A DNA stretch of 64,000 nt from Takakia lepidozioides (GCA_030704615.1 CM060732.1:40362001-40426000); one strand, 5' to 3'; shown: positions 12,189 through 24,018, counted from the stretch's first letter. The notes: generated by a model from the sequence alone, not told the origin. Made by a program: numbers and translations.

Positions 12189-12273
12189 TGTCGTGCGCAT
12201 ACATATCGCTACACAACTACATCGCTGTCCAAACCACACCACACATATATGCACAATAAAGTAGTCTGCCACA
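12189..12273 (-). repeat. Terminal repeat B2 of element C
   Basis: Near-identical to 12619-12702; ends GCACGACA (sense) at the TSD. Confidence 0.92.
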
Positions 12274-12274
12274 A

Positions 12275-12616
12275 TGATAGAAAACCAACGAACACACTGG
12301 ACACAAAACATGAAACCAAACATCACTCTTTAAAACAGTAGTCGAGCCAGGGGCACCCCAAGCTATGGGGACTCCACCCCACAACACCTACACCCCATCA
12401 TAGTACACTCAGACCTAAACGCATGCAGGAGTTCGGTCGCGCAGGCTCAACTCGAGAAAGATGAGCCGCGCGACTGCCGCTCTCGTGAAGATAAGACGGA
12501 CCAGGTGTCAAACTAAACTTGACACCTGATTTAACACTTGACCTAAATCCAAGTGTTAAATACAAATAACTAGTTTTATTCTAGCTGTTTTCACACTGTG
12601 CTTATTTAACTTGACA
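12275..12616 (-). repeat. Repeat A2 of element C
   Basis: Copy of 23670-24018; sense TGTCAAG...CTATCA. Confidence 0.95.
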
Positions 12617-12618
12617 GC

Positions 12619-12702
12619 TGTCGTGCGCATACATATCGCTACACAACTACATCGCTGTCCAAACCACACCACACATAATGCACAATAAAGTAGTCTGCCA
12701 CA
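12619..12702 (-). repeat. Repeat B1 of element C, directly after the PPT
   Basis: Sense CTAGGGGGCGAT then TGTGG...GCACGACA, then GC, then A2. Confidence 0.92.
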
Positions 12703-12959
12703 ATCGCCCCCTAGCTGGTGGATAGGTCCCTCTACCTCCAGATAGCTACAAGATGTAATAGCCACAGCCGTACTAAGTCCTCTATCACTGTCCCTATTGT
12801 ACTCAAACTCTATAGACCAAGAGGCCGGGTACAAGAGTAGCCCCATCGTTAGTCGCCGTCTTGCAATCTATGAACTTGAGCCAAGATCTCGTGTGTTCAA
12901 GGTCTCCTAGTAGCTGGGCTTGCGTTTCTTGTTAACCTCCCATGGTTGTATCCACTCCA

Positions 12960-14300
12960 CTATCCAATGCAATGTGGACATAACCAATCCCCCCGGAACC
13001 ATCTCAAGAGGTGGAGTCAAGCATCCCATATGCCAACCTCTAGAGCACGATCACATACCAGCATGGTGGCTGCCCCTTTAGCAGACCCACACAACATGCA
13101 CCTCAAACCTGCAGATACCACTGCCAGGTTTGGGTCAATCCTGCCATCGACATTCGGAAGGTGACATGGCGCACAATTACGCACATGGTCCTTCCAAGTT
13201 ATGCCATCCCGACCCTCCAAGACCAAGACGCCTGAGGGCAAGACCTCTCGAACCCTCAAAATAACACGTCCTGCAGTCACATCCAGGGTCGTAGGAGCAG
13301 TCTGCTGCAGATAGACATAGTCACCAGGGTTGAATCTCCGAACCCCAGGACGATAGCCCCACCACGTATGGTAGCATACCTCAACGTATCACGGTGTTGT
13401 GCAATGGCAAGGTTCTCGAAAGCCATGGGCATGACTCTCTTGAACAACTCTGCACGCTGCTCACATGCACGTGCCCACACGTCCGGATCGTCAAGGTTAA
13501 GAACTGTAGCAGCTTCTCTGCGAATGGATGTAGGCAAATCCGGCTCTCGGCCAAAGAGAAGAAAGTATGGTGAGAAGAGGCAAGTGATGCTTGCTTGCTG
13601 AACCTGTAGCCCATGGCTAACCAGGGTAACTGAAGGTCCCAATCTCCTAGGTGTCCCTTCTGCAAGCCATACTTGCGCAAACCCCTCTTTACTGTCTGAA
13701 CAACTCTCTCTGCCAAGCCATCGCTTCAGGATGATCCCGAGAAGTGGTGCGGTGGTCTATCAAGGCTTTGTCACACAAAGCCTGAAACTCCCCCAAGAAC
13801 TCTCTCTCCCTTGGTCCGTGAGTACCTCAGCTGGAGCACCGAATCGGCTAAGCACACAATCCAGGAATGCATACGCAGCTCCCTCACTAGCCTTATCAGG
13901 CAATGGAACCAATTCAATCCACTTGGAGAAGTGCTCCACCATCACCAACACGTACTTGTTGTGGCGCATGGTCAGTGGCAACGGCCCTGCGAAGTCAAGA
14001 CTCCACCTGTAGCCCAATCCCATGATCGGAAGAGGGTGCAATTGTGGAGTAGGGGCGTTGAATGAAGCACGCACCCTGTCACACACCATGCACCTAGCCA
14101 CAAATTGTTGCACCTCTGTGTGCATACCACGCCACCAATACTGCCCCTGCAGTAGACTATGAGTGCGTCGCACCCCAAAATGCCCCAACTCCTCATGGGC
14201 ATGCCGCACACTAACCGTGCCCGCTGTGTTGGGTGAGGCACAATCCTCACTCGACCATCCTCCCACACTCGGAGCAGGTGTGTCCCCTCCCACCTGAACC
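12960..14300 (-). pseudogene. Integrase (HHCC + DDE) with C-terminal PHD finger, element C
   Basis: HEELGHFG..CMVC; WSLDFAGP, LTDQG, AERVVQT; PHD CMLC..MLVCD..GWHMGCLTPPL..GDWLCPHC (frameshifted). Confidence 0.92.
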
Positions 14301-14459
14301 TCTTGGCTCGTTGTAGGATCCGATCCCTCTCCTTGGCAGTCATAGTGGCTGCCGTGTCTCCACTGCGGAGGTAGTCCAACACAACTGAATCCTCATGTAT
14401 ATCTTTGGCGCCACCCTGCTCATTGCTGGCCTCAGGGTCCTCAGACACTTGATCTACAG

Positions 14460-15990
14460 TCATCCCTGTTGTAGGTCCAACCTGGCCTTCCGCTGCCAAG
14501 ATACACAGAAATGCAGATGCATGCCATCCGGCACCATCTCCTCGTCCGTCTCACCATGCCACCGAGCTCCAGTGTCATCCTGCTGGCTCGTGCATGGATT
14601 GCGACTCAACCCATCTGCATTTCGATTGACCAAACCCGGTCGATGCACCACCTGAAAGTCATACTCTTGAAGGATGAGTGCCCACCGTGCAAGCTTCCCC
14701 GTAAGCTTGTCTGACTCCATCAACCACTTGAGTGGTTGGTGATCCGTGACAAGGGTGAAGAGATTGCCGTATAGATAGCACCTGAAGTGTGCCACGGCCC
14801 ACACTGCAGCTAAGCATTCTCCCTCATATGAGCTATACTTAGACTCTGCAGCATTGTTCGAGCGACTAGCATAAGCCACTACGAACTCTCTTCCCTCATC
14901 ATCCACCTGTGTGAGCACCGCTCCAAGCCCCAGCATGCTCCAATCTGTATGCAGCTGAAAAGGACGCCCCCTGATAGGTCGTCTCAAGATGGGCGCCGAG
15001 GTCAACCTCGCCTTGAGCTCTTGAAAAGCTTGTTCTTGCTCATCTTCCCACTGCCACTCCTGGTCCACCTTGGTCAGCTTGGTTAGAGCCTTTGCAATGG
15101 CACTAAATCCCTTAACAACCGTCTGTAATAGTTTGCTAACCCCATGAAAGCTCGAACTCGGCTCACATCCGTGGGGCGTGGAACCTGTGCAATGGACTCT
15201 ACCTTAGTCTGCTGTACCCCCAATCCTCCAGGATATATCATGTGACCCAGATACTCAATCTGGTTGTGGAAAAACTTGCACTTGCCCGGATGTAACTTCA
15301 ATCCGTGCGTCCTCAAGCGCTCAAATACCCCCTGAAGGTGTCTCTCATGCTCCTCCACCGTAGCACTAAAGATGATGATGTCATCTATGTAGCACCGAGC
15401 AAACTCCACCCCTGCTAGAATCCTGTCCATGACTCTTTGAAACTCAGCGGGAGCGTTTTTAGCCCAAATGGTAAGAACCGCCACTGGTATAGGCAATCCT
15501 TCCCGTGCTCATTGATCCCCCAGAATGCCGTCTTTTGCTTATCCGCCTCCTTGATCGGCAACTGGTGATATCCGGATCGTAAATCCAACGTGCTAAAGAC
15601 CTTGGAATGCCCAATGGCATCAAAGATCTCCTCTGGTGTTGGCATGGCATACCTATCGGACTTGGTCTGACGATTTACAGGCCGGTAATCACCGCACATA
15701 CGTCTCTCCGTCCAATTGCCATAGACATCCTTCTTAGCTGGCATCACTGTGGCTGAAGCATACTCTCCACCAGAGAGCTCCACCAACCTGCCTCCCAGAG
15801 ATCTTGAGTCCTCATCTGAATCAAAGACCTCTCCATGTCACTGTATCTATAGGGTCTCCGAAAGATTGGCGTGTCAGTGGCCAACTCAATACGGATCTCT
15901 TGACCCTTCAGTGCTCCCAAGTCCTTCAAACTGAAGGCAAAGCAATTCCTGTAAGCCCTCAGGAACCGCCGTATACGTCGTCTCTCTCCT
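14460..15990 (-). pseudogene. Reverse transcriptase and RNase H, element C
   Basis: [44 protein letters not shown]; RNase H LHTDWSMLGLGAVL, YEGECLAAVWA, VTDHQPL. Confidence 0.95.
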
Positions 15991-22646: not shown

Positions 22647-22733
22647 TCCCTGCTCCTCCTGCTTCTCTTCTCTACCTTCTTCTGCTGCAGCCGTCCACTT
22701 TGTTGGAGTAGGATCCCCTCCTCGGGTCGAAGG

Positions 22734-23015
22734 ATGGCGTCTTCGGACCTGATCTGGTTGTTGGCAAAGAACAGCAACAAGTTTTTGGTGAAGAGGAACG
22801 GCAATGGCAATGCCTCTGTGACATTCAGCTCTGAGCCGAACAATTGTATGACTTGAACACGTTCCAATATTCAGGGCTTGCCAATAAGAAGACAGTGGCT
22901 GTCGCAGGGCCGTTGCCTAAGCTGGTGAGGGTCTATCAGTTGTGCTTGCCACCACCAAAACTAAGAAGGTGAACCAGCCCTCAGTTTCAGTTCACCGATC
23001 ACACTAAAGAAGGAT
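22734..23015 (+). pseudogene. RPL28: Captured 60S ribosomal protein L28 (eL28) fragment
   Basis: MASSDLIWLLAKNSNKFLVKRNGNGNASVTFSSEPNN..GLANKKTV..VVLATTKTKK; frameshifted. Confidence 0.88.
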
Positions 23016-23147
23016 GTCATCTGGCGTTGCTGTAAATCCATCGCGAGCAATGAGACCAGCTGCAATGTCGTCTCGACATGCTCTAATTCCCTGACTATGA
23101 CTGTAAGCACCCGTGGCTTGGCCTGGTATACTTTCAGGAATTCGCCA
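23007..23147 (-). pseudogene. AlaAT: Captured alanine aminotransferase fragment
   Basis: [39 protein letters not shown]. Confidence 0.88.
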
Positions 23148-23293
23148 ATATTGCAATACACAATACTTGATCACCTTGCTGACACGGAGAGGAAAAAAAA
23201 TCATGCATTCATGCAGGAAGCAACAGCCTGCCCCACAGCCCGTCTCATGGCTACCGCTCTCCGGTGCAACGTCCAGCAATGCTTCCAGCCACC

Positions 23294-23445
23294 TCAGACT
23301 GCCATCAACTCACCGAAGTTGCGCATGAGGAAAATCGCTCCTGCAAAAAGCGCCTCTGCTCGCAACAACCTCAAGTGTGCAGCCAGCTTCTCCTCATCTC
23401 CACTGCCCACTGCTTCTTCAATTTCGGAAAGGCAGTCGCAGCCAT
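23294..23445 (-). pseudogene. TOM5: Captured mitochondrial import receptor subunit TOM5 (one frameshift)
   Basis: MAATAFPKLKKQWAVE / [34 protein letters not shown]. Confidence 0.8.
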
Positions 23446-23653
23446 GCTTGCTGGATTGCACCGACTCCCTCTTTGTCTATCCTCTTTGTTTATTGCTGCT
23501 ACTTGACCCCATTCTCAGATATAGCCACATGTTGACAAAAATTGCAGCAACATCTCAAGCCTCCCGTTCTGCTCCCCGTGACCAAGCTATATTATAATAG
23601 TGCTTAAAAAACAAAAACATCATATCTAGCTTAGCACTGGAAAACTAGATAGA

Positions 23654-23669
23654 GCTCATCTTTCTCGAG
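23654..23669 (-). promoter_or_regulatory. Non-tRNA primer-binding site of element C, complementary to its own LTR
   Basis: Sense CTCGAGAAAGATGAGC directly after A1; perfect reverse complement at 23853-23868 and 12451-12466. Confidence 0.85.
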
Positions 23670-24018
23670 TGATAGAAAACCAACGAACACACTGGTTACA
23701 CAAAACATGAAAACCAAACCATCACTCTTAGAAAATAGTAGTCGAGCCAGGGGCACCCCAAGCTATGGGGACTCCACCCCACAACAACCTGTACCCCTAC
23801 ATAAGCACACTCAAATCTAAACACATGCAGGAGCTCGGTCGCGCAGGCTCAACTCGAGAAAGATGAGCCGCGCGACTGCCGCTCTCGTGAAGATAAGACG
23901 GACCAGGTGTCAAACTAAACTTGACACCTGATTTAACACGTGACCTAAATCCAAGTGTTAAATACAAATAACTAGTTTTATTCTAGCTGTTTTCACACTG
24001 TGCTTATTTAACTTGACA
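23670..24018 (-). repeat. 5' repeat A1 of element C
   Basis: Copy of 12275-12616; begins TGTCAAG at the TSD. Confidence 0.95.

Follow-up and report, generated by a model that had tools for sequence, protein, structure and literature searches.

Structure and classification of the element

The 64,000-nucleotide stretch of the Takakia lepidozioides assembly analysed here (GCA_030704615.1, CM060732.1:40362001-40426000; hereafter the window) contains an 11.8-kb Ty3/gypsy retrotransposon, element C, at positions 12189-24018. Its coding strand is the minus strand, as supported by the open reading frame (ORF) pattern and the GC skew, which switch exactly between 12 and 24 kb. The 4-bp target-site duplication (TSD) ATGA lies on each side and the termini read TGTC...GACA, in agreement with the initial annotation of this DNA, which had described a single TSD-bounded element of this length. 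Read on the minus strand, the order is long repeat B1, body, short repeat A1, the dinucleotide GC, B2 and A2 (Table 1). Two full, identical long terminal repeats (LTRs) are not present; instead, the 5' end consists of B alone and the 3' end of A-NN-B-A. This is the layout originally written as 'A...B-A-B', with the letters swapped. For B1 and B2, blastn gives an identity of 94.6% (12 mismatches over 341 aligned positions); that of A1 and A2 is approximately 99%.

The coding region has the order gag, protease (PR), Dnmt3-like cytosine methyltransferase, reverse transcriptase (RT), RNase H, integrase (INT) and PHD finger, the order that the initial annotation had given with a C5 methyltransferase; Pfam matches, legible motifs and colinearity with an intact relative (P0288) all support it. 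The order PR-RT-RNase H-INT is that of Ty3/gypsy Pol, and the integrase is a DDE enzyme with an H2C2 zinc domain, as both Pfam and the colinearity with P0288 indicate. No chromodomain is present at the integrase C-terminus, where a PHD finger stands in its place. A tyrosine recombinase was not found by Pfam in C or its relatives, in which rve and Integrase_H2C2 alone were detected. TG...CA termini and a 4-bp TSD are present in all four complete copies of the family. From domain order and Pfam-level similarity, on which the gypsy assignment rests, C is very probably a degenerate copy of a Ty3/gypsy-type lineage of the same kind as KnitGypsy-Dnmt3, here in a land plant. As part of the same very probable identity, the Dnmt3-like cytosine methyltransferase of this lineage is placed between protease and RT, and its PHD finger follows the DDE integrase.

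Table 1. Features of element C and its neighbouring relative D, in window coordinates.
Feature	Position	Strand	Evidence or remark
TSD ATGA, 3' side of C	12185-12188	.	direct reading; same 4 bp at 24019-24022
Short repeat A2, 3' terminus, ends ...CACGACA	12189-12274	-	adjoins B2 end directly
Long repeat B2, starts TGTCAAG	12275-12616	-	primer 16-mer at 12451-12466
Palindromic junction CACGACA-GC-TGTCA, A1 end meets B2 start	12612-12625	-	two window matches
Short repeat A1, starts TTGTGG directly after polypurine tract	12619-12703	-	repeat search, direct reading
Polypurine tract AGGGGGCGA	12704-12712	-	direct reading
PHD finger (C4HC3), frame-broken	12970-13100	-	three-frame reading; aligns with P0288 residues 2214-2337
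Integrase (H2C2 zinc domain, DDE core) and C-terminal region	13355-14403	-	Pfam Integrase_H2C2 E=2.5e-15, rve E=1.9e-10; tblastn
Reverse transcriptase and RNase H	14571-16184	-	Pfam RVT_1 E=3e-18, RT_RNaseH E=2.4e-37; tblastn
Dnmt3-like C5 DNA methyltransferase, three frames	16379-17329	-	Pfam E=6e-4; aligns with P0288 residues 949-1275
Aspartic protease, LLDSGA motif	17714-18051	-	tblastn to P0288 residues 669-781
gag, two CCHC knuckles and weak Retrotrans_gag match	18829-20173	-	Pfam E=1.5e-4; knuckles by eye
279-aa ORF upstream of gag	20772-21608	-	
Conserved coding region upstream of gag, C-terminal part of 279-aa ORF	20799-21248	-	tblastx 2e-11 to L012 6317-6760
Copy-specific insert between primer site and conserved coding region	21300-23653 (start approximate)	-	without similarity to relatives
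SmB (snRNP B) Sm-domain host fragment, intronless, sense strand	22383-22604	-	phmmer vs PDB, E=1.4e-7, chain residues 14-83
Putative self-priming primer-binding site CTCGAGAAAGATGAGC, immediately 3' of B1	23654-23669	-	exact complement of 16-mer in B
Long repeat B1, 5' terminus, starts TGTCAAG	23670-24018	-	primer 16-mer at 23853-23868
TSD ATGA, 5' side of C	24019-24022	.	direct reading
Relative D, 5'-truncated: PHD, polypurine tract 25169-25178, A1 25179-25327, GC, B 25330-25655, A2 25656-25821	24363-25821	+	

Methyltransferase and PHD finger

The relative P0288 is an intact polyprotein of 2358 aa, in which Pfam places PR, DNA_methylase, RVT_1, RNase H, integrase and PHD in that order. C is colinear with it by tblastn. 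Their alignment requires at least 11 frame changes, and copy C is therefore dead. The methyltransferase of C is split over three frames, which explains its weak Pfam score, and across these frames DNA methyltransferase (DNMT) motifs I (FGG), IV (PCQ), VI (ENV), VIII and X are legible in order. A 221-aa piece of it finds 776 relatives at E<=1e-3 in a representative library. A PDB search with this broken piece returned no match, and intact relatives replaced it as queries; the best PDB matches of the DNMT from a Calypogeia relative (P0165) are DNMT3A/3B (E about 1e-8), followed by DRM, which agrees with a Dnmt3-related enzyme. The PHD finger of P0288, the counterpart of the PHD region in C, is recognised by Pfam with E=5.8e-11. 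By analogy, the methyltransferase may methylate the cDNA or nearby DNA, while the PHD finger may tether the integrase to histone H3 tails.

Cargo and upstream ORF in the 5' region

The 5' region of C carries an insert of approximately 2.3 kb that is common to no compared relative; the leader of the relative L020 is approximately 230 bp. Six host gene fragments had been proposed for the element, a count that was not reproduced. The Sm-domain fragment of SmB is solid, a 34-aa NDUFV2-like stretch is doubtful (E=0.75), and a Pfam search that included ten more pieces of the insert returned nothing significant, leaving no further host fragment. The insert also contains the microsatellite (TTTTCT)5.5, reading AGAAAA on the element strand, at 21775-21807. 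As for the extra 5' ORF of the initial annotation, the 279-aa ORF exists, and the related copy L012 has a conserved counterpart of its C-terminal portion ahead of gag, so this portion of the ORF belongs to the family; the ORF has no database homologue at E<=0.001 and no known domain.

Copies in this and other genomes

Three further complete elements share the layout B1, body, A1-NN-B2-A2 found in C with its TSD ATGA: L009 on a JGI metagenome contig (TSD AATG), L022 in Sphagnum troendelagicum (ATTC) and L023 in Calypogeia fissa (AATG). A 4-bp TSD at borders fixed by the repeats in four of four complete elements is far beyond chance. The nhmmer profiles of the A and B repeats served only to locate copies. 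The 3' half of the layout is seen in D, L003 and L008, and the 5' end was left unscored in L002, L004, L008 and L012-14, which are too decayed, interrupted or repeat-poor. The split repeats are, judged from these copies, a trait of the lineage and not a one-off chimera.

Element D, the 5'-truncated relative in the window, is 85% identical to C over C positions 12679-13512. As first annotated, it shares with C the PHD finger (C4HC3, legible in both), the A-GC-B-A 3' end and the primer motif. Nesting of C inside D was considered and rejected, as the flanks of C show no family similarity before D's own start at 24363. The view that DNMT, PHD finger, split repeats and self-complementary primer site are family traits is borne out by their recurrence in other copies. 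One outcome that the initial annotation had named as fatal to its proposal, that C is a one-off chimera among copies with ordinary LTRs or no DNMT, did not materialise: other copies keep both the DNMT and the split repeats.

The nearest named relatives of the C methyltransferase share 58-70% identity with it and belong to Calypogeia fissa, Marchantia polymorpha, M. paleacea, Riccia sorocarpa and Sphagnum troendelagicum; JGI and ENA environmental contigs supply many others. In more distant polyproteins, the DNMT stands either before RT, as in C, or between RNase H and integrase. Most of these distant polyproteins have a C-terminal PHD finger, and one polyprotein is from the chlorophyte Monoraphidium. 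No Klebsormidium protein was found by name among the matches.

One relative differs in its organisation. L020 (ENA ERZ25067493, ctg159469_5x_c; positions 1-18357) is a contig flagged as circular, comprising 2.2 tandem units of 8262 bp that are 99.8% identical. Every unit encodes a single intact DNMT-PHD gypsy polyprotein of 2358 aa and has a single A-GC-B block. The contig may represent either a tandem array in a genome or extrachromosomal DNA. Two other copies have unusual ends: the L002 copy in Calypogeia breaks off where A1 ends, with unrelated DNA beyond (13827-13890), and the L012-14 copy has a polypurine tract and an A-like end without terminal repeats (L012 14259-14520). These may be unit-length or truncated insertions.

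Polypurine tract, primer site and palindrome

In every legible copy, A begins directly after a conserved polypurine tract (PPT; ...CCAGCTAGGGGGCGA) and B ends directly before the primer site. The tract has the same motif and position in D, L003, L008, L009 and L022, and a variant form in L023. B holds a TATA-like box and then a primer sequence of 12-16 nt. In C, the 16 nt that follow B1 match, without a mismatch, the reverse complement of a 16-mer within B, for which chance predicts 0 matches, as in the non-tRNA, self-complementary primer-binding site (PBS) first annotated. C has no tRNA-type PBS, and Rfam and tRNA scans of the window returned nothing. When the leader of C is folded, its 5' end pairs with the PBS (z=-6.1). 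Primer and PBS change in sequence between lineages while their complementarity is kept: the pair is exact over 16 nt in C, over 12 nt in L023 and over 15 nt in L020, where it lies about 30 nt after a TATAAATA box, and has 1-2 mismatches in L009 and L022. Read from these pairings, the arrangement would be Tf1-type self-priming, in which the RNA's own 5' end is the predicted primer. Self-priming is known for Tf1/sushi elements and, in plants, for Tcn1 and TAR elements (PMC6317226).

In L023 (2000-2030), the PBS sequence recurs inside B shortly upstream of the primer sequence, giving a perfect local hairpin, CTTGGAGAACT-AGTT-AGTTCTCCAAG; the stem GGCTCA...TGAGCC in C is analogous. Such a hairpin may act as a switch between local and long-range pairing.

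The palindrome CACGACA-NN-TGTCA, where A1 meets B2, occurs twice in the window, in C and in D, against 0.02 matches expected by chance. It is kept in L003, L020, L022 and L023, even though the DNMT identity of L020 is only 42%. The termini of the integrated elements are the arms of this conserved internal palindrome, GACA-NN-TGTC. The outer ends defined by reverse transcription are not conserved (ATCA, TTCA, CTTA, TTTA) and frequently have no CA. Bounded by PPT and PBS, the block A-NN-B has, on its sequence, all that an LTR would need for reverse transcription. The integrated ends lie inside this block, at the palindrome arms, so what stands in the genome is the standard LTR-body-LTR form circularly permuted, with the palindrome as the point of opening (B, body, A-NN-B, A), and this permuted copy is flanked by the 4-bp duplication typical of DDE integrases. 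Finally, B2 adjoins A2 without an extra base; the B|A joint therefore unites the last base before the PBS with the first base after the PPT.

Proposed integration mechanism

These observations suggest a possible route to the permuted copies, which we put forward tentatively: end-joined cDNA would be recut by the integrase at the palindrome. Self-primed reverse transcription would produce ordinary linear cDNA carrying A-NN-B at each end. The cDNA ends would then be joined into a form resembling a 2-LTR circle or into a head-to-tail form. In one internal palindrome, the integrase would cut behind each CA, which would give CA-3'OH ends and 2-nt overhangs, and would finally insert the permuted linear DNA. 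There is precedent for integrases that cleave palindromic LTR-LTR junctions (PMC1180852, PMC1905944), and the L020 contig is suggestive of such an intermediate. A non-standard integration intermediate, as the initial annotation had put it, is thus a reasonable inference. Taken as a whole, the identity of the element together with this mechanism is the explanation we consider moderately probable.

Several points weigh against it. A circular or joined cDNA form of the family was not observed, and L020, whose units have a single A-GC-B block each and lack a B|A joint, falls short of showing the proposed intermediate. End-joining tends to be imprecise, yet the copies all have an exact B|A joint. 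AATAAA-like motifs are found early in B, before the presumed transcription start. In three of the four complete elements, the long-repeat pairs are 2.5-3.5 times more diverged than the short-repeat pairs, and A and B pairs that were equally new at insertion would not predict this greater divergence of B. Pooled over C, L009, L022 and L023, B differs at 85 of 1352 positions and A at 11 of 414; the differences are mostly transitions and rarely at CpG. As copy C is dead, activity is not legible from it. C was also matched to KnitGypsy-Dnmt3 through the published description of that element.

The repeat geometry is exactly that of split-direct-repeat tyrosine-recombinase elements, and de Mendoza et al. 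called the repeats of KnitGypsy-Dnmt3 DIRS-like (PMC5890265). One could suppose that a cDNA without the two termini regains them with the internal A-NN-B joint as template or splint, in the manner of the internal complementary region of DIRS-1 or the B1A2 joint of Ngaro/PAT, and that the DDE integrase inserts the product with no joined circle being cut. The internal joint does have the sequence expected from joining both termini, and a linear single-stranded cDNA is reported for DIRS-1 (PMC7192593). We nevertheless judge this unlikely, given that the lineage has no tyrosine recombinase and does have 4-bp TSDs, that a canonical PPT and a putative self-priming PBS around A-NN-B already account for normal LTR synthesis, and that the exact B|A joint would be left without a role. 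Alternatively, the RNA might span B2 and A2 and the B|A joint be copied from the parent in every cycle, with first-strand synthesis starting at or beyond the end of A2 and the 5' end later trimmed at the palindrome. Such read-through would account for the invariably exact joint, and the AATAAA-like motifs early in B make the choice of poly(A) site less than obvious. It would, however, leave the conserved, covarying and putatively self-priming PBS beside B1 without a role; no primer site follows A2, because the flanks differ among copies; and the left end would still require internal cleavage. Inheritance by read-through is accordingly the less probable of these two alternatives, and we regard it as decidedly improbable.

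A rearrangement peculiar to C can be set aside with far greater assurance. An ordinary LTR element might have been scrambled by unequal recombination, partial deletion of its 5' LTR and LTR tandem formation, with the DNMT captured by chance; among plant LTR elements there are cases of tandem LTRs and of captured host fragments, and C itself carries the SmB fragment. Against this, the layout, the junction motif and the DNMT position recur in Sphagnum, Calypogeia, metagenomes and D, with each complete copy having its own TSD, and many of the 776 DNMT homologues lie within gypsy polyproteins. The complete layouts of L009, L022 and L023 refute this explanation, to which we assign almost no weight.

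Comparison with known elements

The closest described element is KnitGypsy-Dnmt3 of the charophyte Klebsormidium nitens, a gypsy element with Dnmt3 in Pol and a repeat structure of DIRS type (de Mendoza et al. 2018, PMC5890265). The likeness extends to the gypsy domain composition, the absence of introns from the element, the Dnmt3-related, non-rearranged DNMT in the Pol ORF and the DIRS-like repeats; a Dnmt3-related DNMT embedded in gypsy Pol and split repeats are both found in C. The host differs, being a charophyte in one case and a land plant in the case of C, whose relatives are of liverwort or moss type, and the text of PMC5890265 makes no mention of a PHD finger, self-priming, a palindrome or TSDs. 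The initial annotation had presented C as a candidate new retrotransposon system. Its kind has already been described: the combination is known because KnitGypsy-Dnmt3 was reported with Dnmt3 in Pol and DIRS-like repeats.

Ngaro/PAT-like split-direct-repeat elements of the DIRS order share the A1...B1-A2-B2 geometry, in which joined termini recreate the internal junction. They differ in having a tyrosine recombinase and no TSD, where the C lineage has a DDE integrase with H2C2, TG...CA ends and 4-bp TSDs. C therefore shows one hallmark of the order, split repeats whose internal junction matches the ends, and lacks the other two, a tyrosine recombinase and the absence of a TSD. Tf1/sushi and plant Tcn1 elements have a PBS complementary to the 5' end of their own transcript, as is predicted for C, and resemble C in having a chromatin-reader module at the integrase C-terminus; they have ordinary LTRs and a chromodomain, in contrast to the permuted repeats, PHD finger and DNMT of the C lineage. 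In foamy virus and HIV-1, the DDE integrase cuts an internal CA...TG palindrome and so restores ends competent for integration (PMC1180852, PMC1905944), as it would in the C lineage. The retroviral palindrome is the circle junction, whereas that of the C lineage lies inside the LTR defined by reverse transcription, and integrated copies of this lineage retain the circle-type B|A joint uncut.

Other features of the window

An ordinary Ty3/gypsy element adjoins C at 5880-11650 (plus strand). Its two 515-bp LTRs (5880-6386 and 11140-11650) are 96% identical and offer a contrast with the split repeats of C; its pol is fairly open, with RVP_2 and RVT_1. An ORF at 3077-3655 (plus strand) has a DUF659 match just under the Pfam cutoff (E=2e-8; 34.5 vs 34.7 bits). 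DUF659 is typical of hAT-type transposase relatives, and this ORF may be a DNA-transposon remnant. A pair of inverted repeats of about 300 bp, 78.6% identical and 2.2 kb apart (43815-44117 and 46321-46614), may likewise represent DNA-transposon ends. The ORF at 55180-55920 (plus strand) encodes a 246-aa product that combines the globular domain of a linker histone H1 with a lysine-rich tail.

An intronless gene at 59694-62624 (minus strand) encodes a 975-aa pentatricopeptide repeat (PPR) protein of PLS type with E, E+ and DYW deaminase domains. Its internal repeats of approximately 303 bp explain the self-matches at 60555-62284. The presence of a PPR-DYW gene marks the host as a land plant that edits its organelle RNA, and presumably not a marchantiid liverwort. 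Together with the nearest relatives of C in liverworts and Sphagnum, it supports the land-plant host named at the outset.

Implications

Copy C is dead, and its effects are ordinary. A 2019 review stated that methylase-encoding transposons are absent from land plants (PMC6338049), and the reference classification of plant LTR elements has no such lineage (PMC6317226). We found no paper that places a DNMT gypsy element with split repeats in land plants, and the presence of this kind there appears to be unreported. PHD fingers are common accessory domains of the transposons of Chlamydomonas, a green alga (PMC8557442). The copies in Calypogeia, Marchantia, Riccia and Sphagnum mean that bryophytes carry methylase-encoding transposons, which affects the counting and interpretation of DNMT3-type genes in early land plants. 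Standard LTR finders seek two identical LTRs and will therefore mis-annotate such elements. A PPT and PBS around a permuted LTR, a conserved internal palindrome from which the ends are formed and a 4-bp TSD also provide a testable model for split repeats made by an integrase.

A broader and even more tentative proposal is that a widespread green-lineage branch with DDE integrase replicates via an obligatory end-joined cDNA, similar to a 2-LTR circle, that is reopened by the integrase at a conserved palindrome internal to the LTR. If this is true, a by-product that is a dead end for retroviruses would be the integration precursor in this lineage, and the origin of DIRS-like split repeats without a tyrosine recombinase would be explained. 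From chlorophytes to bryophytes, this lineage would also have retained both its Dnmt3-type methylase and its PHD reader.

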